A stretch of DNA of 64,000 nt, taken from positions 186,001 through 250,000 of the forward strand of contig NW_020846801.1 in assembly GCF_003704095.1 (NCBI RefSeq), read 5' to 3'. Origin of the DNA: Pocillopora damicornis (lineage: Eukaryota). Shown piece by piece: positions 8,522 to 63,898 of the stretch. The notes below the pieces were generated by a model, which worked only from the letters and a program-made list of their open reading frames with translations, did not search any database and had not been told where the DNA came from. The position numbers and the translations under genes were made by a program. The stretch's first letter is position 1; the number at the start of each line of letters is the position of its first letter.

Positions 8522-9156
8522 TGTAAAAGATTTCCAAAGATAGTAAACACCAGCCCGCACTGTGATTATATTATAAAGTGATATGAAAGGGCTCCATTTA
8601 CGTAAAATATGTTAAAAATTACACCCCCTCTGCAGGTTATAACTTATGACTAAAGGTCTGGTCTCCAATAAGTATGTGTGACACCAGGTGAGTCTGATCC
8701 GTGACAAAAAACAAAAACATAGGCTTGCTGTGCATGCAAGAGTTATTTTTTATAAAATAATTCAAATAGTACGCGTGCTCTGATTGGCCATAAAACTATT
8801 TTACATGAGCGTATGTAAACACAGTTTTCGTTCCTCTTTCATTAGTCATTTTATAAAAGAAATGTAAAATGGTTTCCGTGTTTATATAGCCTGATGTACA
8901 TCGCCAGAAATCAAGGACATTTCGAGCCCGCTAACAATTATCAGCGGTATATCGTATTACACTCCGGGATCACGAGAATTCAATATGCCGGCGATCACGG
9001 CCCGATCTGCAAAGAAGAGTGTTTCGTACCACGACTTATACAATTTGAGCACCGCANNNNNNNNNNNNNNNNNNNNNNNNNNNNNNNNNNNNNNNNNNNN
9101 NNNNNNNNNNNNNNNNNNNNNNNNNNNNNNNNNNNNNNNNNNNNNNNNNNNNNNNN

Positions 9157-42300: not shown

Positions 42301-43173
42301 AACCTATCAGCGTTTTATGCTGTAATGATGATTTACTTTAAGTTTACCGATATAGAAAGATGACAAAAATTAGCCATCGCAAACCTTGAGTCTGCCGGGA
42401 AGTGATCATACTTATTTAAAAATAGAAATAAAGTTGACTCCAAAGCTCAGCCACGAAAGACCTATAGGTCAGTCAGGGTCTTTCTACTTGAAGCAAGTTG
42501 GTTTCTTGAATTCAAAGGGAAATCTTAACAGGTGGAACAACCTGAGGTGTTATATTCCACAAGTAAGGAGACAAGTTTGATGTACTACAAAGTGACGCAA
42601 TTGGCACACTGTAAGAAGTGTTGTGTATAAAAATATTAAAGAATCCTAAACAGCTGTTGAGTAATTGATGGTGATTGATACGTTTGGCAAAGTACAAAAA
42701 AAAACAAAGTTTGGAGTTAGATTTTTACCTTGAATGAAAAACTTTGACACCTTTCCATCGAGAATAAAGAATGCCATGTCTTTTTACCTCGTGTTTTGTT
42801 GCTATGCTAAGATTGATAATTATCTTAATGGGCGGCATGTAGTGGCAAGAGGACTCACCTTGCCGCATGGAGGGCGTGAGTACGGTTTGAGTCAGGACCG
42901 AGACATAACTTTCAAAAGAAAGAAATAATAAGAAGAGACGTGTTTGAAATGGTTTAGAGGAGAGGATTTTCGATTTATAGAAGTCACATTTGAAACACAG
43001 CGATATTAAAAGGTTATCATTAACGCTTCGTTCATTGGTCGTCTCGATCCAAAGACATAAACTTTAGACACAACATGTGTCCCTGTGTTTAGCTTGTATT
43101 TTCTGAGCTAAAGAGATAGAATGGAAAAATCGTAAGATGTTCATTAATACGTTTTTTTTTTTGCAGGGTTGAG

Positions 43174-46100
43174 ATGATTATTTTATTACTGCTACGAAGC
43201 ACGCTGTTGCTTCTCGTAGCAAACTATTCTTTTGCCCAAGAATGGTACAGCCAAGACAATTATGGACCCATGTATTACGAGCCAAACACAGTGGAGGAAT
43301 TAAAACCTTCATTTGTGGAAAAGCGGCAGGCAGAGAGCTTAGCCACTGAATCAAAGTCTTTTTATTTGTCGGAGCACTCCGCGTCTAACGTCCGTGAAAA
43401 ACGAGACATAGGTGACGTGGACGCTAAAAAAAACAGTAGTGACGTCACGGAGTATACCACAAATGAAGGTGTTAATCACGTGGCTGACATGCCCGAGGAA
43501 AATGACCAATCATTTAACCCAGATAGCTCTCTAGAAGCGACCTCGCACAGTCCGACCAATGACAGCTATGAATATATGCAAAGTCCGACCAACAGCAGCT
43601 CTGAGTACGTGGAAAGTACTAACAACAGCAGCAATGAGTACATGGAAAGTCCTAACAACAGCAGCACTGAGTATGTGGAAAGTCCTAACATCAATGGCTA
43701 CGAAAACGCACAAGACGTTGCCAGTGATAGCTACGAATTCACACAAAGTGTTGCAAATAATAGCGTTGAATATGCTGCCGAAGATAGCCACGACAAAGCT
43801 CAAACCGTTGCCAATGATAGCTACGAATTCACTCAACGCATTGCAAATAATAGCGTCCAGTTCGCACCAAATGTTGGCAAAGACAGCTACGAAAACGCAC
43901 AAAACGTTTCCAACAGTAGCTACAGTATAACTGATTCCAACCAAGTGAATGAAATGCCGAATGAAACAATGAAAACCGGACCTGAAGGGACTGAAATGTC
44001 TCCATTAACACCCGACGTCATGCACAAAGGCTCGGCCGAGGGCAGCGCGAACGACGGTCGTATGGACGTGACAGAGGAACCAAAGGATGATGGCGCAGGA
44101 GACCTAGAAACCAAACCTGTCGATACAGCCCCTAGCCATGAGACCTCTGGAACACCTGACTTCATGGAGGAGGTCGACGAAAGCTCTGGCTCTGGAAATT
44201 CAAATGATCGAGAAAATGATGATGAGGAGAACAAAGCGAAAAATGGAAATAAAGACGATAGGAATAGGAATAGGAATAAAAGTGATGATAGTGCTAACGC
44301 CAGGAAAGAAACTAACGGAAGGAAAATGACGCCCACATCGGCAAGCCGGGGTGAAGATAGCAGTGGAAATTTCAATAACAGAGAAGTCGATGATTTGTTT
44401 ACAGACTACGACGAGGATGAGTATGAGGATGAACAACCGGTGAAGAGGCAAAATTTGGGTACGAAAATTATTAGATGAGTAAACTGTATCATTTTATACT
44501 TAACTTCCATTGAATTAGAGGATATATGAAAAGCAAACATCTGAACCACGGAAAAAGAGAGAGGTCTTTGAGGTTAGAAATCACAATTGACAAGCTAAAA
44601 TAGAGCCTAAACTTAGCTCAGTTAGTTTCAGTCAGTCAGTTAGTTTCTGTGCTACACCAGTATCGCAGAATAGTCCTTGGTTCGGATCCCATTCGAGCCT
44701 GACTTTTCCCAGGCTTAATTTTTACCACCATCAGCTTTGCGATGATCTGCATTTAATTGGTCAGAAGAACACTATGTGAATAAGAAGTGGCTAACTCTAA
44801 AGCTTCCTTCGTTTCAATTTGTAGCCTGGGGTGCTCCAAGACAGCAATATGCGTATTCCTCAATGCCATGTTGTCCATCAAACATGGTTTGTCCAGGTTA
44901 GTTATAAAATAAACCAGTTTACATTGCATTAATTTTTCATATTCCCCACCTCAACTCACTCTATTCACATTTCGCAATAGAAACATACTTTGCCTCGTAC
45001 ACATATCATCATCCAGTTATCGTATGCCACGAGAAGATGAGTTAAGAATCTCGTCACATATTCTAATCAAATACTATATTTCCGTCTTCCTTTTTCAGAT
45101 AAACCACCGTGTGTCCCTGACACTGGTGGTTATAAGGGTTTCCAAGGTTACATTAACTATCCAGGGTACCCACCTAATTACCAGTCCCAAGCTGTACCGA
45201 GCTTTCAGCCTCAAGTGGCTCCAACTTCGCCGCATTACGCGAATCCCGGACCTGCTGCCAAGAATAGCAAGGCAAACCCAGTCAAGGCACGTCCTACATC
45301 AGAAAAAGCTTCCACTAGAAAAGTCTCTTCTTGGGACCAACTGGGATCTGACAGGAATGCTTCACCACAAACGAAGGGTTTTATTTCAGACGCAGATGAC
45401 TACCATGAATTCAACGGGACGGAACAGAGCTTTGCCGGGTACGATTTTAAACAGAACGAAGACAAATTCTACAACAGCACTGGAAAACATGATGACGAAA
45501 ATAAAGAGTTTTTAGAAAAAAATGACTCGAATCCGCTGACAACGCAGTTGATATTAGAGAACGAAAATGACCATGTTCGAGAGAATAATTCTATTACACC
45601 AACTAAAGAGAACGATAAGGAAAATGTGAAACAACAGAAGTCCTCCGAAGAGCCAAATTACAAGGATGAAATCGAGAAAGAAGCCGTGGAACAAGAGAAA
45701 GAAGCTGATCGGATGGCTGAAAATGAAGAACATAAAGACGACGAGGACGACGACGACGACGATGATGATGATGATGACGACGACAACGAAGACGAAGACG
45801 ATGAAGATGATGATGAACGAAATAACAACGATGATGACCATCAGGGACAACACGCACCTGATAACAAAGGACAAAAGGATGACATATACAATCCTACAAA
45901 TCAATCATTTGCAGTCTCTCCAACAGTGCTTCCAGGAATGTGTCCACCTTGTCGTAAGTAATACCAAAGTGTTAATGTCATGGAATGTATAATCACGACA
46001 TCTCTACTGCTGTCATATCATAGATAAACAAGATAGGATTAGTGGGAAAATCATTTAGTAGTCGGATCACACTGTAATATTAAATCAAATTAAATTAAAC

Positions 46101-49100
46101 TGTCTACACGTGAGATTATATTAAAATGACTAATTCTTTTTTTTTTGTTTCCATTTTGCAGCAAAGCCAACAAAAGCGCAAGGTAAAGAAATCCAAAATA
46201 TTAACACAACATCTGTCATGTATTTATATTTACGAAATATTCCTTCAAGAAATCGCTAAGTGCTATTTTAGTCATAAACATTTGTGACATATAACTCATA
46301 GTCAGCAATAGTGTTTTCTTAAGGAAGACTTAGCAGTTAAAACACCAGGTCAATCTGTGCATATCGTTCAATTTTGTACTGATCCACTGCGTGATCGATG
46401 TTTTCGCTCAATACAAATTCACTCTTACCTTGGCCTTACAATGGAGAAGGGTTCTATTTAGATCATTGAAATCACTCCCAGCTTTGGGTTGACACTTTAC
46501 TTCTCATAATTAAATAAAGACAATTCAGTTTACACACACTTATGTTACGACATCGCTTAATCTAACCAGCGTTATGTTGCATTAACATCCTCTCAGCTTG
46601 TAGCGCCAAAATAGATCTGGCTTTCCTAATCGATGGTTCTTCAAGCGTTGAAAGATACGGTGTCGGAAACTTCCGAAAACTAATCGAATTTGTCCGAGGA
46701 CTGACGATGGGATTCGCCATTTCCAAAAGAAATACCCGAGTGTCCTTAACTGTGTATGGAACAAGACCGAAGATGATATTTAATTTCCGAAGGTTGGTTG
46801 TCTCATGAAAAAGTACTGTTATCATCTGTAGGAAATAGTTTAAAACTAGTGTAGGAAATACTTTAAAGCTAGTGTGAAATATATCCTTAAATCAATGATG
46901 TATTCGCTGTTGTAACTGTGATCAAGCTGCTCTTCAGTATAAGATGGGAAATCTGAACTCACTGGTCGCGATATCCAAATTAAATGACTTTTTTTGAAAT
47001 ATTCGTTGATGTTCAGTTCAATCACTCCACGGAAAACTGAAACGTTTAGAATGATTGTTTCGAACGAAAGTGGTATGACAGATTCCCCTTACAATGGAAA
47101 TAGTGATCATCTTTGACCTCCTTGTTAAAGTTAACATATCTGGTTTCCCATCTTTGAATTTCGAAGGGTGGATAATACTTATCCATCAGACAGCAGTGGA
47201 AGTTATCTGATGCCTGCTCTGGCTCTCGTATTTCCAAAAAATTTTTTCTATGAAAAAATTAAAGTAAATTGACAGATGTAGAATTTGATCATTGACTTTC
47301 GGTAATTTCAGATATCAGAGTAACTCATTGTTATTCACGGCTCTCAACCGGCCAATCTACTATCCACGGACGGGAGCGAGAACAGGTCGGGCTCTCAGCT
47401 TTGCCAACAGAAGGCTTTTCACGAGAAGCCGACGTGTTCGAGCTCGTAAAGTACTGGTGGTTATTACTGATGGTGGCTCAATCGATGACGTACATGGAAT
47501 CTCTAAGAGACTACGAGCCAACGGTATCACAATCTATTCAGTAGGAGTGGGAAGGTACTTCAACGCAAAGGAATTGGACTCGATGGCAACTGATCCTGAC
47601 AAGACGCACGTTTTCACGTCGGATTTTAAGCAGATACAGTACATCACAAACGATCTTAAGAAAGCGATCTGTTTGAGTAAGTATTCAACGAGCTTAAGCA
47701 CCAAACGAACTCACCGTGCGAGAAAAAATTGATTGGAGTCAAAGTCTCAACTCAGTCGATATTTTTTACATATTTGCTCACAGACGTACATCATCTAGCG
47801 GAGTGCAACATTGAGGTCATCTGTAGATCTATGAATGAAATGTTCAATCTGGATAACAATTATATTCATTGAATCACACTGCACAATACCTGTCGACTTT
47901 GTGCTTCCTTAGTAAAAAATATCTAGAAATAATTTTAAAACTAACCAATGTTCTATAAGGGTCCTATACCGTTAGATGTGTTGACCTATTATAAGCTTCC
48001 AAAAATTTGAGCTCCCGATTACCTCTCCTACTTTTCTCCAAAACACGTTCATCACACAAAGTCTTACGTGGACAGAAAAAAGCAAAAAACACGGATTTAC
48101 TCATCGACAGCATGTACTTGCCCACGGCGGAGAAAGAGAAGAGGATGTTGTCCTTCAACCTCTTTCTGATTCTGTAATTTGAACATTATGTAACGTATCT
48201 AATCTGTCATATACCCTGTTTAATGGTTAACCTTTTGCTGTTTAGGTGCGGGTGGTACTCTGTCAGTTTCAAAGCTTCAGCCATGTGTTTGCGGACCAAC
48301 TAAACCAGTAGGTCCTACAAAACCGGGTTAGTATGAAGATGTTAAGCTAAATGGTACCCTTCAAAATGTCAAATAGTAGTCTACAATTCTTCTAATATTT
48401 ACACTTGTTAGTCCCTTGATATGCGATAGTGGATTCGTTTCAAAACCTACAGCTTTAAACCTGTAGAGGTTACTCATATCATGTGATCGATCTCTTGGAT
48501 AGAATATATGACGCACAAACCTCAACTGTCCTTCTTTCTGGCGAAAGATAGTAGAGCGGAAAGCGTTCATTGGAAAGGATACTCTTGAGTAATAAATCCT
48601 ATGCATCTGAAGATTGACTGATGGACTTCTAACAATTCGCATGTTGTTATTGCAGTACCTAAGACAACACCGAAAAGAGGCGGCCCAGGTAAACCTGGAA
48701 AACCAGGTGGTCCAGGTGGTCCTGGTGGTCCCGGGGGTCCTGGTGGGCCTGGAGGACCGGGTGGACCAGGCGGCCCAGGAGGTCCTGGAGGGCCCAAACC
48801 TGGTACAACCACAAAGCCAACGAAAAATCCTCCAGGTGAGGAATTCACAACCCATCTTTCTATTACACAGTTTGATCATAGCACCGCCTGATGCTATCTC
48901 ATTCACGCTTTTAAAGGTAAACCAGGTGGACCTGGAGGACCTGGAGGACCCGGCGGACCCGGAGGACCTAGTGGCCCAGGTGGCCCTGGAGGTCCCGGAG
49001 GACCAGGTGGTCCTGGAGGTCCAGGTGGGCCCGGTGGACCTGGAGGACCAAAGACAACCCCAAGACCAGGGAAAACAACAAAGCCTCCAGGTAAGCCTGG

Positions 49101-52100
49101 AGGCCCTGGGGGACCTGGAGGTCCAGGAGGGCCTGGCGGCCCAGGAGGCCCAGGTGGTCCCGGTGGACCAGGCGGACCAACAACCAAGAAACCAGGTACG
49201 ACTTGAGCTTACTATGGAAGCTTTGAAAAAAATAATTCAAGGATTAGGACAAATAGTGTCAGTGAATAATACATTTTCTATTGACATGCACCTAAGCTGC
49301 CAATTGATGTTAGTGCCAAATTATGATATATTATGATCGTTATAGTTTTGAGCGAGATGCTAATTTACCAACTGATGGTAAAGGAGACCGGCAACTTCGT
49401 TGTATCATAACAATTATTACAACTATTGTTTTATACCAAATTTTTCTTGACGATATCAATGTGAGTCGTTTAGATACGAAAATAAAATGGATATCGTAGT
49501 TACAAAAGAAGGAAGCACCATTGTAGCCGTTGCACAACATTTCTTCCATAAATATCGAATGTGTTCATGCGGTGAAGACGCCTATGTAAAATTACTTCCT
49601 AGGAAAGTCTACAAGACCAACAAAACCAACAAAGAGACCTGGTAAACCTGGAGGACCCGGAGGACCTGGAGGCCCTGGAGGGCCTGGAGGTCCTGGAGGT
49701 CCAGGAGGTCCTGGAGGCCCTGGAGGTCCCGGAGGGCCTGGTGGAAAGACAACGCCCGTCCCAGGAAAATCTACCAAACCTACTAAGCCAACAAAGAAGC
49801 CAGGGAAACCTGGAGGGCCTGGTGGACCTGGAGGTCCTGGAGGCCCAGGTGGACCAGGTGGGCCCGGAGGACCCGGAGGGCCAGGAGGACCCAAAACAAG
49901 CCGTCCGGGAACACCAACAAAGCCAACTAAACCAACAAAGAAACCAGGTACACCAGGAGGTCCGGGTGGCCCGAAAGGTCCTGGTGGTCCTGGAGGCCCT
50001 GGGGGACCTGGTGGCCCTGGAGGGCCTGGGGGTCCAGGAGGTCCTGGAGGACCTGGAGGGCCAGGTGGTCCAGGAGGACCAGGTGGACCTGGTGGTCCTA
50101 CAACAGCATCTCCAAGAGCACCAACCAAGAAGACGACACCAACTCCTTATGCCCCAGGGAAACCCAATGGCCCTGGAGGACCAGGGGGACCTGGGGGACC
50201 CGGAGGACCCGGTGGCCCAGGAGGACCTGGAGGACCTGGTGGACCAGGAGGGCCGGGAGGTAATGTGTCAATGATATCGTCTTAATTGACTTATGAATAA
50301 TATCTTAATCAATAAAATCATACTGTAACAGAGGTTTTGATCTTGATATTAATTGTTAAACGTTAATTTGCTACTTAAAGAGGGCGATAGTGTCCTGGGT
50401 TCACGCCCTCCACCTTGGTTATTAAACACTCGGTTGTCCGTATTTAATTACTTTTAACTCTCTGTACGTTCACAATGTTTGTTCCTAATTATTTTTTTTC
50501 TTATGTGTCACTTAAAATGTAACGTGCATTTGAATATATCTTCATGTTGATTTGCCCCATAGAAATATTGATTATTGCTATACGCCTGCGGTTTCCCTTG
50601 CTCGAAAGAAGATTGTGATTGGTTGATTGGTAATCACGTGAGCCTGGATTAATCAAAATGTATCCCGCTCAAATTAAATTTTGACAGAATGTCAAAATTG
50701 TATCCTGATTCGAATACGTTTATTAAATGCGATCATTTTTTCAGGTTTTTTCACGTAATCAGAGCGTCGCTTAGGCCGGTGGTGTGATTGTAGCGAGATA
50801 TTTTTTAAACTTTGTTATCTTAACTCCTCGGGGATTCCAGAAAATTTTGATTTGTCGCTAGCTCTCCGCCAATTCTTAAAATTACGATGGACTAACCTGT
50901 GACGAAAAAGCAGCGCTCGTCTGCTTTATCGAAAGACGAAATCGAATACTGGTTTAGCAGAAGGACTACGAAAATACGGTTTTTTTAAAGGTACATTTGC
51001 GGTGTTTACAAAAAGTTGTACTATTATAAACGCTCCTTTTTTGCTAATCCACAATGTTCATCCTAAAAAAATTTTAAATGTATAACAGAGCACTTAGTGT
51101 CTGCTCCCTCGGGAAACAGTAAGTTTCTTCTCCAGAGAGTTGGAAGACTTCGTCTCAGGAAACATTGAGACTCTCGGGAAGACAAAACAAACTGATCTTA
51201 TCAGCAGCAGACATCAATTGCATTTTATCAATCGTTATCAAAAGCTCCTCGTGTTTACTGTCTCATGGTTTGTTTACATAGGTCCGGGTGGCCCAGGTGG
51301 TCCCGGGGGACCTGGCGGTCCGTACGGTCCCACAACAAAGAAACCAGGAAAACCAGGAGGACCTGGTGGTCCTGGAGGTCCAGGAGGACCTGGAGGACCT
51401 ACTACAAAGCCTCCTGGAAAACCAGGAGGCCCTGGAACCCCAGGCGGTCCAGGAGGCCCAGGAGGTCCGGGTGGGCCCGGTGGTCCTGGAGGTCCAAGTG
51501 GACCTGGAGGTCCAAATGGTCCCAAGACTACAACTCCAAGGCCAGGTGTGCCGACGAAAAAGCCAACCACAAGGAAACCGGGCACTCCAGGCGGACCAGG
51601 AGGCCCTAAGGGGCCTGGTGGACCCGGTGGCCCAGGAGGACCAGGTTTGTGATACGGAACGAGTCTTCTTATATGTTAAACGAACAAAATATAAGGAAAT
51701 CAAAGTTAAATGATAGTATTAAAAAGATCCTAGACGAGTGTTTGAACTCAATTTCAGCAGTCATGTCATACCAAGTTTGATGAATATAGGGTGACGCTTA
51801 CCTAAAGGGTTTTTTTGCCTTTTAAGAATCCTTACTTAAACTTGCTGTTTTGCTGGCAAATTGTGGTACAGGAAAGTAACAAAATTGTTAATTATGTGAT
51901 TCAATTAATTGACATCTGCGTTCCGTTTGATTGGCCGTGGTGCAGCTGCCACAATTTCCAAATATAGATAATGTAACGTTAAACCAGCTGGAAACCAGCC
52001 AAATAGTAAACCTTTATAACAGTACCGCTTAAGAAACCTGAAGCTCACATCATGTTACGGACGTTAAGAATGTAAGGGTCGTAATGAATTAAATAATTAA

Positions 52101-55100
52101 TGAATAATATTTATGAGAATATGTCAAGTAAAAAGATATTGCTCTATTTTCAACAGGCGGACCTGGAGGCCCGGGGGGTCCTGGAGGCCCAGGTGGTCCA
52201 ACAACTGCACGACCAGGTGTGCCTACCAAACCCACCAAACCAACAAAACGCCCAGGACGCCCAGGTGGACCAGGGGGTCCAGGAGGACCCGGAGGACCAG
52301 GAGGTCCTGGCGGACCTGGAGGACCTGGAGGACCCGGTGGACCTGGGGGTCCAGGAGGACCAACAACCGCCAGACCTGGGGTGCCAACAAAACCAACCAA
52401 ACCAACACAACGCCCGGGTAAACCAGGTGGACCAGGAGGGCCGAGTGGACCCGGAGGACCTGGAGGGCCTGGGGGTCCTGGTGGACCAGGTGGACCTGGG
52501 GGACCTGGAGGTCCGGGAGGACCAACAACTACTAGACCTGGTGTACCAACTAAACCAACCAAACCAACAAAACGCCCAGGTACGCCAGGTGGACCAGGGG
52601 GGCCAAAAGGGCCAGGAGGACCTGGAGGTCCAGGAGGTCCTGGAGGACCAGGAGGACCAGGTGGGCCTGGAGGACCTGGAGGACCAGGAGGGCCAGGTAC
52701 AGTGAGAGCTTTGTGCAATCCACAACACTATCTGCAATCCATAACACATTTTTAACTTTTATCAACGAGCCAGCAAATTTTAAAATGTTGCGATATATTA
52801 TATGCTCCTCTCAGAATGAATTCTTCGTCTTTGTCGTTAATGTTCGAATATTATGCGACTGTTAACAACTTTAAATTCATATTTGTTATACTACTTGGCG
52901 AATTGCGTTAATTTTGCAAAGTTCTGACCAACTAAACCCGGAGCACTCGTTATCAAGACAGTATTAGAGTATCAACATTTTTCAAAAGCGAACAATTTAG
53001 TCCTGATACAGTTGTTTAGATATCTCGTAAGTTTCTTCTGAAGTATCGCAACGAACATCACATGTCGAACACAACCTCCTGAACATGATATAATTTCCAA
53101 GAACTTAACCTACCTAACAAACTCAGATCTGAGTCAGAAGGATCCATTTACAACCCTGTGATAGGAAACGTGAATCTTAAACATCAAGTATTTTTTTCGA
53201 TAAATCTAGGTGGACCTGGAGGGCCGCCAGCAGGACAGCCTACAACACCCGTCACAAAACCACCCGGTACTCCAGGAGGTCCAGGAGGTCCAGGAGGACC
53301 TGGTGGGCCTGGTGGACCTGGAGGACCTGGAGGACCAGGTGGACCAACAGGACCAACAAAGCCAACAAAGCCACCTGGCAAGCCTGGAGGACCTGGGGGA
53401 CCAGGAGGGCCTGGAGGTCCAGGAGGTCCTGGAGGACCCACAACGAAACGTCCAGGAAAACCAGGGGGACCCGGGGGTCCAGGAGGCCCTGGAGGACCCG
53501 GTGGCCCTGGTGGGCCAGGAGGACCAACAACTAAACGACCAGGAACACCAGGTAAAAATTAAACCGTAACGGTGAAGCCAGCAGGAGTAATGCAATTGCA
53601 AAGCTGCCACTTTAATATGTTTTCGATAGAACAAGTAGTCATTCATCTATGGGAATTACTGTGTTTTAAATCTTTTGCTAAAGCTAGTAAACATTAATTG
53701 AAAGCTGAGAAAAATCGAGATTGAATTACGATGGCCAATGTTTTGAAAAATGCATCGAAACACTATCAAGATATTAGATTATGAAGAGATGAGCAATGAA
53801 AGCGAAAGTATGTCTCAAATATTATTCATTACTTTCCTAGAAACTGGAGAGGTTTTAATGTGTTTTCCTTTGCTGATATCGGTAGTTCATGTCTCTTCTA
53901 TTCAATTTGGCTTTTAAGATGCGATACATTATACAGCACAAAATATTCACTAGATTATTCTGAACTTTAGGTGGCCCTGGAGGGCCAGGCGGCCCCGGAG
54001 GACCAGGTGGTCCTGGCGGTCCAGGAGGTCCTGGAGGACCTGGAGGTCCCACTACAAAACGTCCAGGTTCCCCAGGAGGACCAGGAGGTCCTGGTGGGCC
54101 TACAACAAAACCGCCACCTGGGAAGCCTGGAGGTCCTGGGGGCCCAGGGGGACCAGGAGGTCCTGGAGGACCTGGAGGACCAGGAGGACCAGGAGGCCCA
54201 GGAGGACCAAAGACAAAGTCACCAAAACCAGGAGTACCTAAAACAACACCCACGACTAAACCACCAGGAAAACCAGGCGGTCCTGGAGGCCCAGGGGGCC
54301 CTGGTGGACCAGGAGGACCAGGAGGTCCTGGAGGCCCTGGGGGTCCTGGAGGTCCCGGGGGACCCGGAGGTCCAAAAACAACAAAACCAGTTCCTACGAA
54401 GAAACCAACGAAACGCCCGGGATCTCCCGGTGGGCCAGGAGGGCCAGGAGGACCAGGAGGGCCCGGTGGACCTGGAGGACCTGGAGGACCAGGGGGCCCT
54501 GGTGGACCAAAGACGAAACCTCCTGGTACTAAAACCAAACCTACCAAGTATGCACCAGGAAACCCTGGAGGTCCTGGTGGTCCTGGAGGACCTGGTGGAC
54601 CCGGCGGGCCAGGAGGACCGGGTGGGCCTGGAGGGCCACCAGCGAAGACCACGCCAAAAACACCCAAGACAAAAGCTCCAGGTCAGATCACAGAATATTG
54701 AGAAAAAAAAATAAAGGGCTGCTAATAATCATAAAAGTGTTACTGACTATTATCATAATCATAATGGTAAAATTAATGATAATGACAGTGGAATAGGTAA
54801 TTTGATAAATGGTAAATACACATCTGAGGGTTCCAACAGCGGCGGCACGTTGCACATTACTTTCAGAGTTAGCTTACTCAAAACGACTCGTTTATACTAA
54901 GAGAAGCAAAGATGCATACCTCGAAATCGCATACCGCGAAGAAGACAAAAGAAAAACTTATTATGGCAAAACTTAGAGAAATTATCACTTTGTGATTTTT
55001 CTTTAACAATACACCTTTGACAACGACAATGACGGGAAGTGAACTATAAATACTATCATACTTCGTTCCCCTTTTTCAGGCAAACCTGGGGGACCTGGTG

Positions 55101-58100
55101 GACCTGGAGGTCCGGGAGGACCTGGGGGACCAACAACAAAGCGACCAGGATCTCCGGGCGGACCTGGGGGACCTGGAGGTCCCGGTGGTCCTGGTGGACC
55201 TGGTGGTCCTGGTGGTCCAGGAGGCCCAGGTGGTCCAACAAAGAAACCTGGAAAGCCTGCAAAAACCACAACCAAACCCCCAGGAACACCTGGTGGTCCT
55301 GGCGGTCCGGGGGGCCCTGGGGGACCAGGGGGTCCAGGAGGACCAGGAGGCCCTGGGGGTCCAGGAGGTCCAGGAGGTCCAAATGGTCCTACAACTGCTC
55401 CTCCAGGAAAACCCGGAGGACCTGGAGGCCCCGGGGGACCAGGAGGACCAGGAGGTCCAGGCGGTCCTGGAGGCCCGAAAACGGCTCCACCTGGTCAACC
55501 AGGAGGCCCTGGAGGACCGGGTGGTCCTGGAGGCCCAGGAGGCCCTGGAGGACCGGGTGGACCTGGAGGTCCAGGATGTGTCATGCGCCCAGGAGCGAAA
55601 ACAACGCCAAAAAGCGGCCCAACAAAGCCTGGAGGTGCAAAGCCAACAACCGGAAAGCCTTGTATCACTATTCCACCAGGTAACGTGATAATCCAGCATT
55701 TCAAGGGAACGTTCCACGATCTTTAACCTTTTCTATCTTTGCTTTGCATCAACTTTTATTGTCATTTAACAGCTGTGTCCTTATATCTCAAAAAACTAAA
55801 ATGCTTGCATTTGTTCTGTTCCTACGTCTTGTTTGTGTCAAAACGATAACCTCGTGAAAGAACTAGTTTATCAAATTGTAACGCAGAATATAAAAACGAC
55901 TTTCTACGTGAAATAACTGCTTTCATTTTTATATTTGAGGCTTTACTGTCGTGAAGAAACCAACAACTATTCCTACGCGGCCAGTCGGACCATCTGGCCC
56001 CACAACAGGACCTGCTGCCACAACAGCGCCTAACAAAGGTATTATTGTTTTCCTTTTTCTCTTCAGTTGTGATTTAACTTTTAAGTTCAGCTTCATTTAC
56101 AAAAATTAATTTCGTCGCATTCCCTTGCTTTCGTAGCCTTCTCCTCTTACAGTAGTATAGTTACCAAAGATCCTGCTTTGTTTATGTCTCTAATCATACC
56201 AACATATTGTTCGCACATGGTTTTTGTGGAAAAAAGCCAGGACAAGTAAAACCAAGCAGACTAAACGTTAATATCATTTAACGACAAATTTTGCTGAGAC
56301 GTAATTATGAAATTATTTAAACAATGCTATGAATTAAAAAAACCATCGATTGTTCTACAGTGTGCAAAGTAAAGATGGACATTGGCTTCGTAATCGACGC
56401 AGCCGGCGGCCTTAAGAAAGTATTCCACTACATAAAGAAATTCGTCTTGGAATTGGTGGATTCCTTTACTGTCTCCAGTCAGAATGTCCGGATTGGTTTA
56501 ATTACGAACTCTTATCGCCCTGCAGTCAAGATAAGCTTTGGTCAGTTTAACAAGCCGACCCAAATAAAACGCATCACCCGCCTGCTACAGCCCGACGGTG
56601 GAGCACGCCTATCAGGAAAAGCGCTAACCCTTGCATTAAAGCGGCTCTTTCCCGCTAGCAAGGGCAAGAAAACGTTGGTTTACCTAACTGCGGGTAAATC
56701 GTCCGACCGAGTGCTTGGCCCAGTACAACAGCTTGTTGCTATGGGAGTAAATATCTTCAGTATCGGCGTTGGAACTAATGCTGATCTCAGTGAGATTCTC
56801 ACGGTAGCTAAAGATCCTCAGCACTCGTACAAGACCAACTTTAGAGGCCTGGGAACTATAGTGAAACGCATTAAAGACAAAGCGTGTGCAGGTTGGTATG
56901 CCTTTCCTGATTTGAGAGGCAATTTTGAAGGAGAAATTAAGGAGTGTCAGCAGACAGTCTATCAAAAATGGGAAAACCTGTAGCCTAATGACGTGACGTA
57001 ACATTTGTCATTGGTAAATTAGTGGAAGAAGTAAGTACAATGCAAACTAAAAGTGAGTCTCCTAATATTAGCAACAAAGAGTGTTACCAAACGACTGTCG
57101 TTTCATAAATACATGTTGGATTCTAATCATCACCATAAAAACGCACATTACTTTTAGTAAGATGAATAGAGTCAGATTTTTATATGACTCTCTTGTTTTC
57201 CCCCGCAGAGGCAGGAGGCAGTGAACAGGGACCGAAAAAACCCACTAAGAAACCAAGTAAGTACATGAGCAATTAACATGATTCCAGGGTTCACGTTTAA
57301 CCCCATTTCGAATTTATTAAATTTCTCTATCAACAGAACCACCGAAGGCTGTCGCTATTTTCCCACTGAACCAAAAGACTCGAGGAAAAGACATTGGTCC
57401 CCTGAGGAACAGCCCAGGACTAATATATGGTGTTCGACCCGCTCGTGGACCTAATGGTCAGCCTGGTGGAGCCATCAAATTCCCGAAATTTAAGACCGGC
57501 TATGTGGAGTTTCCGAACAGTGGGAAACTGGACACCAAGAATTCCATAACAGTGACTGCTTGGGTCAAACCGGATGCGCCAGGGAAAATAATTGAGTTCA
57601 GACCGAGAGGGGTGACTTTCGGCATTCGATCGCCTGATATTTTGTACGCTCGTTTTGTCCGCCGTAACGGTCGACCAACCAAAACTGTAAAAACAAAACG
57701 GCGGGGAGTTACCTTGCGACAGTGGAGTTACTTAGCCATTACCTATGACCAGCGAACGGGAATGGGAACTATTTGGCGGAACTCTCGACCCATTGCTTTT
57801 CAGAAGCTCGGCTGGATCAGGCTTGCTACAAAGAAACCTCTTAGGCTTGGAGGGTTGACCCGTGGTCGGCGACCATTCAGTGGCAGTATCACGTGTCTTC
57901 AAGTTTACAGCGATGCTTTGACTGGGCCCCAGATAAAGAATGTACAGAATGTTTGCTTTAAACCAGGTACTAATCACCAACCTCGACGTAAGATATACAC
58001 TTAAACCAATTGAATATTGAACAACAATCAACCTGACATTTTGTCCTGATGCTGCTCATTCCAAGCTGCAATTAAACCATTATTTTCAGCTCACCCACCC

Positions 58101-61100
58101 TCATAGTCTTGGATTTGAGAAAGGCCATATTACGCTAAATTCAAAAATATTTTATCTCTGTCAGTCTTAACAGTGAAGACTTAGGACACACGCTTTAATT
58201 CAAATTCTTAAGTTCTTCATCAAAGTAGAATGGGAATGTAGATATGTGGGCTAAGTTATAGAATATAAAGTAACCAGACACATTTTTTTGGTACAATAGC
58301 TTTTAAAGATACGGTGTGCTGCCATACTCCAGAATATTTTAGGAGTACGAGACACGCGTAGTGTACTTTTAAAAATATACCGGCGGAGTATTCGAGCATA
58401 GTCAAGACGAATACTCTAGGTGTGCGCGGGGTATTGTGCGCGACTTGAATACCCTAGGATTCTAAAGCACCACGATCACGTATTCCATACTCGAATACCA
58501 GAGATTACTTTGATTTTTGCGCAGTGTTAGCCACAGAAATGCATTTGGTTGTTTTATACCATACATATCGCGGGTTAATGTTTTTTATTCTGTTTCCAGG
58601 GCAGCCGACTCCCACCAGACCACCAACAGCCCCTGTTCCAGGTAGGAGAGCAATCGACGGATACCACCCAGGAGTTCTTATTTGAACTGATCTATTTTGA
58701 AGTCTAGATTTTATAAAATTTAATCCAAACATAATGTCTTCATCTGGCAAGAGAAGGTTTTTATCTTGGTATAAACACGGTATGACCAATTTAGAAGCGT
58801 TCCAACCTCCTGCACTCCGTCCGCATTTCAGACTGTTAAGCATTTTATCTTCTTGTTTTAAAGTTTTTGTACTCTGAAAATGATCCTGTTGTTGTTGCAT
58901 GTTACCAGCTCTACCTCCTGCGATGGCATTCTTCCCCTTGAAGTCTAAATATGGTGCCCGTGATATAAGCCCAACGAAAAACCGCCCGGGAAAAATCGTG
59001 GGTGCCTTACCAGCCCGAGGTCCTGACGGCCAGCGTGGTAGTGCTTATAAGTTCCGAGGCCGTCCCGATAGCTTCATCGAGTTTCCGAACAACGGACGAT
59101 TGGATGCAAAGGATTCTATAACCATTCTTGCATATGTAAACCCGGAGAGCGCTGGACCGATCTTCAATTTTAATCCCAAAGGATTTGGAGTGCATTTCTG
59201 GATGGTTCGAAAGAATGTTCTCTTCGCACGCTTTGTGAAAAGGTCCAAGAAGTTTACACGGCCTGTGGCTACGAACAGAGTGAAACCGGGCACTTGGAAC
59301 TGGCTTGCAGCTTCATACGATAAGAACACTGGGTACGCACGTTTGTTCGTGGATTCCAAAATCTCAGCTGAAAGAAATCTCGGCAGAATAAAGCTTGCCA
59401 CCAATTATCCCGTTAGAATGGGTGCACGAAAGGGAGATCGTCGCTTCTTCCGGGGGAAAATAACTTGTGTTCAAGTTTACAATGAAGCCCTGACAAGCCG
59501 GCAAATCCGAGCTGCTAGAAAGAGCTGCTTCAGACCAGGTTTGTCGCAGACCTATTTAATCTGATTTTAAATTTTATTCAAGGAAAATAGAGTTACTTTC
59601 ACTCTCTCTACAATGTTTTTCAGAAAATCGTACCTCTAATGAGTCTGAATGAGTCGCCAGTCAACATTTTAAGAGCAATAGAGTGTCTCTCTTTTCCGGT
59701 GCAGTCGATTTTACTGCAAGTGTTATTACTCCTAGCGCCTCATTATGGTCTTGAAGAGAGTTCCTTCGTAAAGAAAATGCTTAAAATGTTTGAATTAAAA
59801 CAAAATTATTTGAAACAATGTTAGTGTAAATGTTCATTTTAGACAAGTTCTTATCGAGTGTATTTTCTGTTTCAGGTAAAGTCAAGCCCACAAAGCCAAT
59901 TTCACCTGTTACCAAACCTACACCGGGTAAGTCTCGTTTCCTTTTTTTTTTCTACATCATAAAACTTAACAGTTGTAAGAGTCTTAAAAAACCGTTTCTT
60001 TAAGAAAATGTGTAAGATATTTTTTTCCTCTGTTCAAACAGCTATCCGTAACTTGGTGGCCGTGTACCCACTGGACGCTACTTCTGGTGCACGTGACCTC
60101 AGCCCTACCAAGAATCTTCCAGGAAAGCTTTCGAGTGTAAATATCGCTCCAGGCCCTGACGGCAAACCGGACACTGCATTGCGATTCTCTGGCAGTCCTA
60201 ACAGTTACATAGAGTTCCCAAATAATGGAAGACTGGACACCAGACGTTCAATCACTTGCATAGCATGGGTGTACAATGAAGGAAGGGGAGGGCCGGTGTT
60301 CCAATACGATCCACGGGGAGTGGGGGTTGGGTTAAGAATCATCGGCTTGGATCGAATTGAAGCGCTCATTGTCAGCCGAAACAGACGAAAGAAAATTCCT
60401 GTCGTGACTCGAAAGAGGTTCTTTAAGCCCAGGACTTGGACTTACGTAGGATTCTCGTACGATTTCCTTTCTGGTATTGTCACATTGTACGTTAATGCCA
60501 GGCCAGTCTTACGTAGGATCATTGGTCGAGTTCAGCTTCTTACTAACAAACCAGCCCGCGCGGGCTCAACCAGGCGTGGAAAACGATTCTTCCGCGGTCG
60601 CTTGTCGTGTATACAGGTGTACAGCAGAGCTCTGACCAGGCGCGAGATCATTGCAGTGAGAAAAAGGTGCTTCAAAGGAGGTATGATAGGTGAAACAGAA
60701 ATTAATTGAAAATGTAAGCCAGATTACCAGCGGGTTAACTTGTATGATAAATCCATGGCCAGTCTGTAGTCTCGTGTTTTTCAAATTGTTTCCTTAAGAA
60801 AATTTAATGAGTGTAATAACATTAATCGTATGCCTTTATTTTACCTTTTTATTGTGTATAGCATCGAAATGATGTTCAGAGAAATTCAACTCAGAAATCA
60901 GATCCAGTAACTTAGCAAAATTACGGTAGGAATAAGAAAGAGGCAAAGGAAAAACTGAGTGCAACAAACTTACTTGCACGGATTGATCTTACAATACTGT
61001 TTAAGTCATTTTGTATCATTTGTTTCTCATTTGCAGCCGGAATAATTCCAGGAAAACCTTCTACAGGTAAGAAGTGAATGTCATTGTTGCATAAATCACT

Positions 61101-63898
61101 CTTCGTTGTTCAGCGATATTTAGATGCGTTAATGTACCTATGATGATTTCAGATACCCCGACGCCTGTGGCTACATTCCCACTCAGTGGTGTACTCAGTG
61201 GACGGGATATCTCTCCAAATAAGAACCCACGAGCAAAACTCCGTAATGTGCGGCCAGACAACGGACCCGATGGTCTCCCTTCAGGTGCCATTAAGTTGAG
61301 AGGTAGTCGAGATAGCTATGTGGTGTTTCCAAACTACGGAAAACTGGACACAACGGACGAAATAACGATCACTGTGTGGGTGAAGCCCAAAAGCGCTGGA
61401 CCAATCTTCCATTATAAGCCCCAATCCTGGGGTGGAGTACATGTCTGGGTTGTAGGACGACCTGGTAATCGAAAGTTTTTCGTCCGATTCTCCACGCGTA
61501 ACGGCAAAACTGTTCCAGCACTAAGAAGTAGGAAAATCAAAATGGGACGATGGTATTATGTGGCTGTTACTTACGATAAAAAGAAGGGAGTTGGAACCAT
61601 TTGGAGAAATGGCTTCATTGATGCTCAGGTATTACAGACATAACAATAGACTGTTTTTACCAATTTAACACATTTGGACCCATTGTCAGCAATTAAGGAA
61701 AGCGATATGTTCACAGTGGTGATTACAACAGTATCCAGAAAAAAGTCTCGCACACAGAGTTCAATTTCCAACTAAACCTAATTTCTTTGCTTTTTTTTGC
61801 TGATAGTCGCAGTCTTACGTTTTAGTTTGTTTGTGTTGTTATCTTCGGCTGACTTTTAACCTTCTTTCCAGTACCCTTTCTCATGGAGAGTAACAGACGC
61901 AATAGGTTAATGAACAAAGCAGAGTATCAGTCATTAACAATATCATTTGTTCGCCATTTAGCGCCGTGTTGGAATTTACAAACTCGCCACTAACTACCCA
62001 GCTATTATGGGGCGAAAACCAGGGGATCGCCGCGTACTGAGAGGAAGCATTTCGTGTTTGCAAATCTTCAAGAAAGCTTTGATTGGACCACAGATTCGAG
62101 CACAGAAAAGGAAATGTTTCAGACGAAGTAAGAGCTGCTTGCTTACTCTTTTTATATAAGACTAATTTAAGTCAAACAGAGACAGACAGATGAACAGGAA
62201 GGGAAAGGAAAACAGACTAACTGACAAACGTACCTACAAACTTACAGACAAATGTGCTTAAAGAAAGATAAAAAGACAGACAGAAAGATCAGTGTATTAG
62301 TTTTCTTACATTTTACAACGTAAATTATCTGATACTGAACTTTTGTTTTCTCTGTATTTTCTCTTCCAAGAACCAAATCCTAAAAGGCCCAAGCCGAAGC
62401 CAGGTGGGTTGTTGCAATATATGTTTGTAAGTCTTAGGAGTGATATCAAAGAACTGCAAAGAGTCGACCACAAACATTTTGCGCCTAGTAAAGAAGGCTA
62501 AGGTTAAAGAGTTGATGATGACTCATTGATGAGTTGATTCACTTACACGGTGGGATCCGAGATAAGTACGAGATCATTTATTAGCTTGAGGCCTGGCAAC
62601 GATGACATAAACGAACCAAATGAACAGTTCCTAATTTCTGTTGCTCATACATGTGGTTTCTTTCCTTTATTATTTTGTCATTTGTTTTCAGTACGGCTTC
62701 ATCCTCTTAGTTTGTACAAAAGCGCTTCATGGGATATTTTTTTGTCTTTATTCTGCAGCTCAGCCGATGCTCATGGGGCTCTATCCGTTTGATCCAATCA
62801 GTAGAGGCCGAGACAGAAGCCCCAATAAAGCACCTAAAGCTTTGTTCAGCAACGTCGCTTTGACCAGTGGTCCCGATGGCCGCCCAAAATCTGCCGTTAA
62901 ACTGCGTGGCCTCCCAAACAGCTACATTGAAATACCCAATAATGGAAAATTGCGCACGACCAATTCCATCTCCATGTTTGCCTGGGTCAAACCTACAGGG
63001 ACAGCAGGACCAATTATCAACTACGGCAGAGGACCCGCCTGGGAGACACACCTGTGGCAGACAGACCCCAAAACGCTCTTTGTTCGATATGTGAAGATAG
63101 GAGGTGCCCCCACTCCGGCCGTTACTAAGGCAGCGCTGACGCGAGGCGTTTGGAATTTCGTCGGTACAACTTACGATGGAACTTATGCCACACTTTGGGT
63201 GAATGGTAAAAAGGTCGCTTCGCGTAAAATCAACAGCATTCGTTTGTCAACAATTGGACCAATAAGGATCGGAGTGAAGAACGGCGATAAGCGTTACTTC
63301 AAAGGCGCCGTAGCTTGTGTGCAGCTCTATCGAGTTGCTTTACAGAAAAAACAGATACGGAGAGCCATGAAAAGATGTATGAGACGTGAGTATCTCAAAA
63401 ATGGAATTGGTTTATGTGTTCTAGGTATTTCAGATTTAGCGCTGAGAAATATTTCAGTAAGAGAGGAAACATATTAAACTTCACCTTTTGGTGAATAAGT
63501 CGACTTGCATTTAACTTAAACGGATATAACCATATGAGAGCAGTTTTCCCATAATTCTTCTGGCAAAGAAATCGGATAAAATCTTGCTTTAGTCAATTAA
63601 ATTATTGTTAGCATAAGCAGATATATTATGACATTCCTGGAGAAACATTTAAAGATCAGAGAAGCCATCACTTTCTTCCTATTCAAAAGGGCGCGGCCCA
63701 AACTGTAATTGAACTTGGTAATCGCGCGAATTTCATATAGTTCTTGCTGATAAAATAAATAGAGAGATAAATGTTTCACACTTGAGGCTCTATACTTTTA
63801 CGTTTAGCAAAGTTGACCATTGATAACTATTTATTTAGGACGCCCGTCTGTTCCCCGTACCACTCCACCCCCACCGCCACCAACTCAGGCACCAGCAT
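43174..63898 (+). CDS. Giant secreted modular protein (acidic pro-region, VWA, (GGP)n/PTK rod, VWA, tandem LamG/ConA-like domains); 3' end beyond window
   Basis: Phase-consistent GT-AG exons: 43174-44458, 44825-44896, 45099-45953, 46162-46182, 46597-46792, 47312-47676, 48246-48326, 48656-48835, 48917-49195, 49603-50259, 51282-51644, 52157-52696, 53210-53551, 53971-54681, 55080-55679, 55940-56038, 56361-56891, 57209-57256, 57337-57966, 58600-58641, 58909-59538, 59876-59926, 60042-60680, 61037-61066, 61153-61628, 61962-62127, 62371-62403, 62759-63385, 63839-63898. That is about 10.6 kb of coding sequence with no stop reached. Signal peptide [21 protein letters not shown]. Confidence 0.82.
43549..43935 (+). 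repeat. Coding 33-bp (11-aa) tandem repeat, about 12 units
   Basis: [77 protein letters not shown] ... Confidence 0.8.
44610..44760 (+). mobile_element. tRNA-derived SINE-like repeat in intron
   Basis: A-box-like TAGCTCAGTTAG, then CACCAGTATCGCAGA, and B-box-like GGTTCGGATCCC. No intact cloverleaf. Confidence 0.45.
45737..45840 (+). repeat. Coding (GAY)n poly-Asp/Glu tract
   Basis: [33 protein letters not shown]. Confidence 0.9.
46597..47676 (+). other. VWA domain 1 of the giant protein (two exons)
   Basis: [17 protein letters not shown]...TRVSLTVY...RTGRAL...[11 protein letters not shown]...IYSVGVG...ELDSMATDP...IC. Confidence 0.9.
48656..55679 (+). repeat. Coding (Gly-Gly-Pro)n blocks with Pro/Thr/Lys linkers, eight exons, about 1,224 aa
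   Basis: GGN-GGN-CCN codon arrays confined to phase-1 exons bounded by plus-strand AG/GT sites. Confidence 0.92.
56361..56891 (+). other. VWA domain 2 of the giant protein (degenerate MIDAS)
   Basis: [16 protein letters not shown]...VRIGLI...SGKAL...[11 protein letters not shown]...IFSIGVG...AC. Confidence 0.85.
57337..63385 (+). other. Five tandem about 210-aa LamG/ConA-like (pentraxin-like) domains
   Basis: Units at 57337-57966, 58909-59538, 60042-60680, 61153-62127 and 62759-63385. Each has FPL...RDxSP...GPDG...SY(I/V)EFPNNGxLD...SITxxAWV...WxYxxxxYD...LxxNG...FxGxxxCxQxYxxAL...C. Confidence 0.8.

Follow-up and report, generated by a model that had tools for sequence, protein, structure and literature searches.

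A stony-coral locus probably encoding a giant secreted matrix protein with a VWA-flanked Gly-Gly-Pro rod and strong charge segregation

Can a succession of open reading frames (ORFs) that look unrelated, some of them on opposite strands, hide a single giant protein and, if so, what kind of protein? This question is raised by positions 43174-63898 of a 64,000-nucleotide stretch of DNA of the coral Pocillopora damicornis (the window, meaning the whole stretch that was analysed), located in a 588-kb contig (C3436) of the assembly of this species (234 Mb, 4,393 contigs). A first-pass annotation of the window had proposed that these positions encode one giant secreted protein combining a signal peptide, an acidic region, a VWA domain, a Gly-Gly-Pro/Pro-Thr-Lys region, another VWA domain and at least five LamG-like domains. 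Our analyses indicate that the locus is probably a single stony-coral transcription unit coding for a matrix protein that is giant, modular and secreted, and that would serve as a structural tether or fibre akin to the VWA-collagens. Flanked by VWA domains, the collagen-like part of this product would be an unusual rod of Gly-Gly-Pro blocks, and charges are strongly segregated along the chain. We did not find any earlier account of this protein in the searchable literature.

The plus strand of this interval contains 28 coding exons, one fewer than the 29 initially counted, which are in phase and amount to 10,531 nt or 3,510 codons with zero stops (coding totals were summed exon by exon over complete codons, and all searches were run per exon). 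A GT-AG solution was available at every junction in the splice-site search, the introns measure only 0.1-1 kb, and all of them are phase 1 except those within VWA1 and within LamG4. The encoded modules follow each other as signal peptide, acidic region, VWA1, (GGP)n/Pro-Thr-Lys rod, VWA2 and five Laminin_G_3 domains. This order, already proposed in the first-pass annotation, was confirmed by the stop-free stretches and by Pfam, and the sizes that it gave (~700 amino acids for the acidic region, ~1,200 for the rod, at least 3,500 overall) match the exon model, as do the limits 43174 and 63898. The gene nevertheless passes 63898 and runs out of the window. The net charge is -92 over the acidic part (741 amino acids), +123 over the rod plus linkers (1,251 amino acids, with zero Asp and Glu) and +166 over LamG1-5 plus linkers (1,131 amino acids). 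The shredding of the gene in the ORF track was confirmed over the rod, which is overlain by long antisense and off-frame ORFs, and gene callers place the rod on the wrong strand in orthologous contigs as well.

The structure of exons 1 to 7 is directly established by RNA. We examined RNA contigs over 42,800-48,400 in four RNA runs (X1, X3, X8 and X12) from three studies; the labels of the RNA and DNA runs that contain the stretch read coral or marine metagenome. The transcript begins with a non-coding exon of the 5' untranslated region (5'UTR), the 3' end of which (41060-41089, plus strand as all exons described below, donor gtaaga) exactly matches the loose 5' ends of X1 and X3 contigs. Since the loose end in X3 measures 79 nt, this exon must start at or before ~41011. 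E1 (43166-44458), preceded by the acceptor tttgcag and opened at 43166 by the RNA contigs, carries the ATG at 43174, a signal peptide of 21 residues and an acidic region rich in Ser, Asn, Glu and Asp (428 amino acids in total, net charge -54). It is followed by E2 (44825-44896), a phase 1-1 mini-exon of 72 nt coding for 23 residues, three of them Cys, flanked by GT..AG joints at either end in X1, X3 and X8, and by E3 (45099-45953; 284 amino acids, net charge -41), which comprises a DKPPC motif, a Tyr/Pro-rich part, a conserved 18-residue stretch and a poly-Asp tract, and ends in ...GMCPPCR. E4 (46162-46182) is a 21-nt micro-exon (KPTKAQ) bordered by cag and gtaaag; it appears as 21 letters between 45951 and 46595 in one X1 contig and matches the genome with 2 mismatches. 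After the two exons of VWA1 comes E7 (48246-48326), a linker exon of 26 residues with two Cys that an X1 contig joins to VWA1 (47676 to 48246-48324) and that is conserved in two other coral genera. Both E2 and E4 had been missed by ORF scanning and were exposed by the RNA contigs. The joints 5'UTR/43166, 44458/44825 and 44896/45099 occur in X1, X3 and X8, three runs that come from three studies, whereas those from 45953 through the micro-exon to 46597, 46792/47312 and 47676/48246 occur in X1 only. RNA joints thus connect the 5'UTR exon, the acidic exons, VWA1 and the linker preceding the rod. Further downstream, the RNA runs contain 45-49% of the sampled words of 55,900-58,100, a region covering VWA2 and LamG1 where the exon share is estimated at ~55%, which implies that both domains are transcribed in the same samples. 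The gene is expressed in polyA RNA of adult colonies.

The acidic head did not match any Pfam family. Several of its elements are invariant in the four sequences aligned from three genera: the signal peptide, the dibasic sites EKR51, R74-E-K-R77 and K424-R425, and the motifs QEWY.Q..GP..Y.PN, SF[VL]EKR, NVR[EQ]KRD and EQPVKRQNL. The middle of E1 varies in length; the exon codes for 428 amino acids here and for about 270-300 in the other two genera, the excess being due to imperfect repeats such as a 12-residue unit and NDSYEFTQ. Comparison of the aligned sequences indicates that E1 has expanded in a lineage-specific manner between dibasic sites that are themselves invariant, and the conservation of these sites is compatible with a predicted proteolytic processing. 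For E3, we detected 15 orthologous genomic ORFs with 34-96% identity.

The two VWA domains are clearly recognizable. VWA1 (46597-46792 and 47312-47676) is encoded by two exons that match the Pfam family PF00092 with 40.8 and 72.5 bits (E 3e-10 and 6e-20; cut-off 23.8 bits), and its metal-ion site (MIDAS) is intact, with DGSSS, RTGARTG and ITDG. VWA2 (56361-56891) occupies one exon (89.8 bits for the same cut-off, E 3e-25) and has lost its MIDAS, with DAAGG, and LTAG in place of TDG. This loss is shared by most VWA2 orthologues, a few of them retaining a DTSSS-like motif. We identified 26 such orthologues in corals, with 58-97% identity; nearly all have the same exon end ...KACAG, with KACGG-type variants in the most distant ones. 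No conserved stop follows this end.

Between the two VWA domains lies the rod (48656-55679), composed of eight phase 1-1 exons (48656-48835, 48917-49195, 49603-50259, 51282-51644, 52157-52696, 53210-53551, 53971-54681 and 55080-55679) in which (GGP)n blocks are separated by Pro/Thr/Lys linkers. A further short linker exon, E16 (56009-56038, PAATTAPNK), is predicted by the splice-site model with an acceptor at either 55985 or 56009. The eight rod exons encode 1,216 amino acids, including 548 Gly (45%), 388 Pro (32%), 110 Thr (9%), 98 Lys (8%) and 21 Arg, so that Gly, Pro, Thr and Lys make up 94% of the rod; acidic residues are entirely lacking. They contain 30 perfect (GGP) runs of 3-13 triplets, for a total of 231 triplets. 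Inside the blocks Gly occupies every third position, a register that is lost at each Thr/Lys/Pro linker (e.g. TTKRPGK, or a 21-residue form). Only two Cys are present, without the flanking pattern of the minicollagen Cys-rich domains.

Could such a monotonous sequence be a DNA microsatellite misread as an ORF? We rejected this possibility: the four codons of Gly and the four of Pro all occur, exon lengths are kept, and synonymous changes by far exceed amino acid changes. When two of the rod exons, E10 and E14, were compared with those of two other genera, we counted 115-124 synonymous codon differences and 13-20 amino acid differences, with a length of 218 versus 219 amino acids. Judged from these codon differences, the rod is under strong purifying selection, and its block pattern itself appears to be held by selection. 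Within the P. damicornis genome, matches to a rod exon with more than 80% identity are confined to this gene. A library search with a rod exon retrieved only spurious Gly/Pro-rich ORFs, but it also missed known orthologous rods and is hence uninformative on novelty. In the literature searched, we found no coral or cnidarian protein described as containing GGPGGP or Gly-Gly-Pro.

The rod and VWA2 are followed by the five Laminin_G_3 domains (PF13385, ~210 amino acids each), which score 48-77 bits for a cut-off of 27.6 (E 1e-12 to 3e-21): LamG1 (57337-57966), LamG2 (58909-59538), LamG3 (60042-60680), LamG4, which is split (61114-61628 and 61962-62127), and LamG5 (62759-63385). Short Pro-rich linker exons are intercalated between them (58600-58641, 59876-59926, 61037-61066 and 62371-62403). 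The last exon in the window, E28 (63839-63898), is another Pro-rich linker, of 19 residues, with a donor gtaagt toward LamG6. Two Cys are invariant across 25 aligned LamG copies. The AlphaFold model of LamG2 has a predicted local distance difference test (pLDDT) score of 96 and a ConA-like jelly-roll fold. Its fold matches include a bacterial arabinan-binding module (Z 21), pentraxins (Z 15-17, one of them 16.9), sialic-acid-binding modules, the NC4 domain of collagen IX (Z 14.6), the heparin-binding N-domain of thrombospondin-1 (Z 14.1) and laminin LG domains (Z 13). The model also matches the lectin-like subdomains of the binding domains of clostridial neurotoxins and of their non-toxic partners (Z 18-21, ~10% identity). 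Nothing points to a toxin identity for LamG2; the likeness reflects the general lectin fold only.

How far is this arrangement shared among corals? In two other genera (L008 and L009, with 59% and 49% identity in the acidic exon), we recovered in turn the signal peptide/acidic exon, the second acidic exon, VWA1, the linker and GGP exons. The gene map of the most distant coral (34% identity in the acidic exon and 62% in VWA2) comprises an acidic ORF, a VWA, ORFs without Pfam match, a VWA and Laminin_G_3. A 9.7-kb contig of this same coral (L023) carries GGP/linker exons followed by the orthologues of VWA2, LamG1, a linker and LamG2; it includes a clear E10 orthologue with the same order of linkers, and the linker exon between LamG1 and LamG2 codes for 15 residues in both species. 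The conservation of this exon order in a distant coral supports the joints from the rod to the LamG domains, and it is from this conserved order, together with the phase-1 splice sites, that we infer all joints after exon 7. The first-pass claim of a single giant secreted protein is thus upheld by RNA joints for the N-terminal third and by conserved exon order for the remainder. The gene occurs in both main stony-coral lineages, the Pocillopora-like one and that of Porites evermanni; in the latter, the VWA2 exon has been deposited as a 182-amino acid 'unnamed protein product, partial' (CAH3178371.1). The members of the orthologue sequence clusters are all genomic.

Was the first-pass annotation right in not recognizing this combination of domains? 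It was with regard to the enlarged acidic region and the (GGP)n rod, both special to this gene, but the VWA/LamG_3/WSC framework corresponds to a gene family within the same genome, where we detected at least 84 LamG-type matches. A paralogous locus spans ~87 kb of the minus strand of another contig (C3313, ~158-245 kb). It contains assembly gaps (N) and comprises ~25 VWA domains alternating with ~30 LamG_3 domains, plus WSC repeats and Pro/Arg linkers. The two loci share the N-terminal cassette, namely a signal peptide, a KRQN site, the DKPPC exon and an acidic exon with KDEVEEDAV..EAD that ends in C.PVCRE and is followed by a VWA1-like domain with a common 19-residue stretch. They also share cationic LamG_3 domains (45-57% identical), WSC domains and Arg-Pro or Pro-rich linkers. 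By contrast, the paralogue is devoid of the (GGP)n rod, and its acidic head is short and much less acidic. The gene studied here is therefore a member of a family of giant VWA/LamG_3/WSC proteins, its own particularities being limited to the expanded acidic head and to the rod placed between two VWA domains. Just upstream of the paralogue, on the same strand (C3313:244000-246056), we observed a signal-peptide exon ending in ...LPGCLPCRK and VWA exons, which may represent a third, smaller member with a C.PCR[KE]-VWA junction.

Beyond the window end, in-phase plus-strand exons continue at 64,335-81,027 (window coordinates). They encode LamG6-9, a split VWA3 and VWA4 (both matching PF00092 too), seven basic repeats of ~100 amino acids, most of them preceded by an (Arg-Pro)n stretch that is sometimes on a separate linker exon, and a 350-amino acid exon rich in Arg, Lys and Leu. 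This last exon has a stop at 81,028, yet a phase-1 donor is found 18 nt earlier, at 81,010. From their sequence and predicted structure, the basic repeats look like degenerate WSC domains (PF01822). Pfam WSC was matched by five of ten repeat copies (best E 4e-7), and the first-scanned copy of this gene reached 14.5 bits, below the cut-off of 27.8. The structural model of one repeat (pLDDT 70) has Wsc1 and the WSC domain of Kremen as top fold matches (E 0.01-0.06). The GC[YFW].D...C...C pattern is kept in copies of the paralogue, and several Cys are lost in those of this gene. Searches of PDB sequences with phmmer, using LamG2 and a WSC-like repeat as queries, gave nothing useful. If all these downstream exons belong to one gene, the whole protein probably exceeds 6,000 amino acids.

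The neighbourhood contains other coding sequences. The plus-strand stretch at about 81,760-101,200, with a LamG-like exon, three pairs of SUEL/rhamnose-binding lectin domains (Pfam E 1e-30) and a 1,620-amino acid open exon rich in Ser and Lys, is probably a separate large gene. On the minus strand of the window, at 8021-8560, an ORF with the catalytic domain of D-isomer-specific 2-hydroxyacid dehydrogenases (Pfam E 6e-16) belongs to an unrelated upstream gene. All the N runs of the window are located before 27,214.

How might such a protein work? Pro preceding Gly is the minimal site for collagen prolyl 4-hydroxylase. Because Gly occurs at every third residue and Pro precedes Gly, the (GGP)n blocks could plausibly be hydroxylated and form short collagen-like (Gly-Gly-Hyp, with Hyp for hydroxyproline) or polyproline-II segments. 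The Thr/Lys/Pro linkers would act as flexible, probably O-glycosylated joints or hinges, such that the rod would constitute an extended spacer of roughly 350 nm at ~0.29 nm per residue. The VWA caps might mediate assembly or partner binding, and polyanionic glycans or polymers would be the probable ligands of the basic lectin-fold arrays. As for the acidic head, it might bind calcium or mineral or, alternatively, mask the basic domains until convertases cut the conserved KR sites. Going further, and in our opinion doubtfully, the (Gly-Gly-Pro)n/Pro-Thr-Lys block copolymer might represent an undescribed class of animal structural polymer with a conserved block pattern, adopting either a Gly-Gly-Hyp triple helix or a polyglycine-II/polyproline-II bundle. 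In that case, within a single chain of more than 6,000 amino acids, the copolymer would connect polycationic lectin arrays with an Asp-rich head that binds calcium or mineral, and cleavage of the head by convertases would operate as a charge switch for extracellular assembly.

Several observations weigh against a single collagen-like product. The three rod exons scanned matched neither Pfam Collagen (PF01391) nor any other family at E <= 0.01, although the composition filters of HMMER may be the cause. Gly in the X position destabilises triple helices, as established with host-guest peptides, and a trimerisation domain was not found. A representative-library search with VWA2 gave no full-length orthologue model among the best 150 of 2,708 matches, where multi-VWA proteins dominate, and word-indexed searches with the acidic exon and VWA2 retrieved exon-sized genomic ORFs only, with no spliced ORF bridging the rod to VWA2 or VWA2 to LamG1. 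The RNA-joint evidence stops at 48326, the later joints depending on the splice sites and exon order mentioned above. Within the region covered by RNA, X3 and X8 contigs extend over E1-E3 without reaching VWA1 or E7, X12 provides a single contig on part of E1 and none on VWA1, and the X1 contig that bridges E3 to VWA1 has just 28 nt on the VWA1 side. A second X1 contig shares 45856-45953 but leaves the E3 donor for 47 letters unmatched in 42,800-48,400, which may reflect alternative splicing to a distant phase-1 exon or a shorter isoform. These data would also be expected if the stretch yielded several products, be they an acidic secreted E1-E3 protein alone, isoforms skipping VWA1 or rod blocks, or, at the extreme, two adjacent genes. 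If the intron after E3 were retained, the protein would end at a stop codon located 5 nt inside it, and since nearly all exons are phase 1-1, their skipping would not disturb the frame. Nevertheless, we consider such a multiplicity of products improbable. X1 joins E3 via the micro-exon to VWA1 and E7, such that in this run a single mRNA carries the acidic region together with VWA1, instead of ending between them. The inspected E3 orthologues all finish at CPPCR[KE] and then run into the intron, where the stop is not conserved. Moreover, introns are short, we did not see any other candidate exon with an ATG and a signal peptide among the stop-free stretches downstream of E1, holes in RNA contig cover are no proof of absence, and the exon order is conserved in distant corals.

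If the locus encodes a single matrix protein, as we favour, where would it act? The first-pass annotation had suggested spirocysts, desmocytes, larval settlement glue or mucus sheets. The candidate sites are the cnidocyst, the interface with the skeleton and the mesoglea, the first two with circumstantial support. In a nematocyst or spirocyst, the acidic propeptide, with Lys-Arg at its end, would target the capsule vesicle, the rod would build the wall, the tubule or adhesive threads, and the basic arrays would bind poly-gamma-glutamate or chondroitin. The conserved SF[VL]EKR located ~30 residues past the signal peptide, followed by RxKR, would fit such a propeptide, although dibasic propeptides are common among secreted proteins. 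The extreme basic charge is also in line with this location, as is the resemblance of the ~30 short blocks with Gly at every third residue to the cnidocyte-specific NvNCol-7; in addition, vWFA-domain proteins figure among the cnidocyte-specific matrix genes of Nematostella (PMC12549020). However, minicollagen Cys-rich domains are lacking, the rod being nearly free of Cys, and no match could be assigned outside stony corals (a weak argument, Porites evermanni being the sole named match). We regard this role as possible but unlikely. At the skeleton interface, in calicoblastic cells or desmocytes, the poly-Asp head would bind calcium carbonate, the rod would span the gap, and the basic arrays would hold the acidic, sulphated organic matrix or the cell coat. 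The resemblance in composition of the poly-Asp tract and the highly acidic head to coral acid-rich proteins, the presence of orthologues in both major stony-coral lineages and the expression in adult calcifying colonies argue for this function. In aboral tissue of Pocillopora acuta, the most upregulated matrix genes include one annotated as Collagen alpha-1(VI) chain (PMC13581030), although this is a different gene and provides general context only. On the other hand, Pfam did not reveal any homology of the acidic region to known skeletal matrix proteins, its poly-Asp part evolves fast (34-59% identity), and the C3313 paralogue combines the N-terminal cassette with a head that is far less acidic. 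The LamG and VWA proteins described in the coral skeletal proteome literature consulted are also different ones, those with LamG being neurexin-like and unrelated to this gene (PMC4890752). We retain the skeletal role as no more than a tentative proposal.

Why does this gene matter? The matrices of reef-building corals are still poorly catalogued, and a large, expressed and conserved gene such as this one is fragmented in at least one public annotation. Because of this splitting, proteome and expression studies that use the fragmented models would miss or misassign it. In the literature searched, we found no description of the giant VWA/LamG/WSC family. The rod, for its part, offers a clean natural test of whether Gly-Gly-Pro makes a collagen-like or another kind of extended fibre, with implications for collagen evolution and biomaterials.

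To which known systems does this protein come closest? Load-bearing materials such as the mussel byssus proteins (preCols, PTMP1) and the silk- or elastin-like Gly/Pro elastomers combine repetitive Gly/Pro blocks with VWA domains, but they belong to other lineages and the resemblance is an analogy only: the coral protein has no sequence homology with them and lacks His/DOPA-rich termini as well as GPGGX or VPGVG motifs. Like the coral acid-rich proteins (CARPs/SAARPs), it is secreted and possesses a long Asp-rich tract, in E3, yet here the acidic part, without Pfam hit, heads an otherwise strongly basic protein. NvNCol-7 of Nematostella has a discontinuous collagen-like region of ~1,000 residues with ~25 blocks of 12-15 triplets, and a propeptide after the signal peptide (PMC12549020). 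The block-wise construction is common to both rods, with ~30 blocks in the coral one. By contrast, the N- and C-terminal Cys-rich domains and the polyproline flanks of minicollagen type are missing in the coral protein, which displays GGP instead of varied Gly-X-Y triplets and contains VWA, LamG and WSC domains. The closest parallel is with the VWA-collagens, namely types VI and XXVIII, the FACIT types XII, XIV and XX-XXII, and Hcol6 of Hydra, in which vWFA domains interrupt the triple helices (PMC12549020). The comparison with collagen VI made in the first-pass annotation is apt in this respect, VWA domains being located on either side of a region with Gly at every third residue. As in the other VWA-collagens, this region is long and much interrupted, and the whole is a large secreted matrix protein assembled from phase-1 module exons. 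Moreover, the FACIT collagens include a LamG-like domain, TSPN, and NC4 of collagen IX is one of the structures aligned with the LamG2 model, as seen above. The coral protein differs from all of them in its triplet, which is nearly only Gly-Gly-Pro without X/Y diversity, in the shortness of its blocks (3-13 triplets) split by Thr/Lys/Pro linkers, and in the 740-amino acid acidic head that precedes, and the nine LamG and seven WSC-like domains that follow, its VWA-flanked rod.

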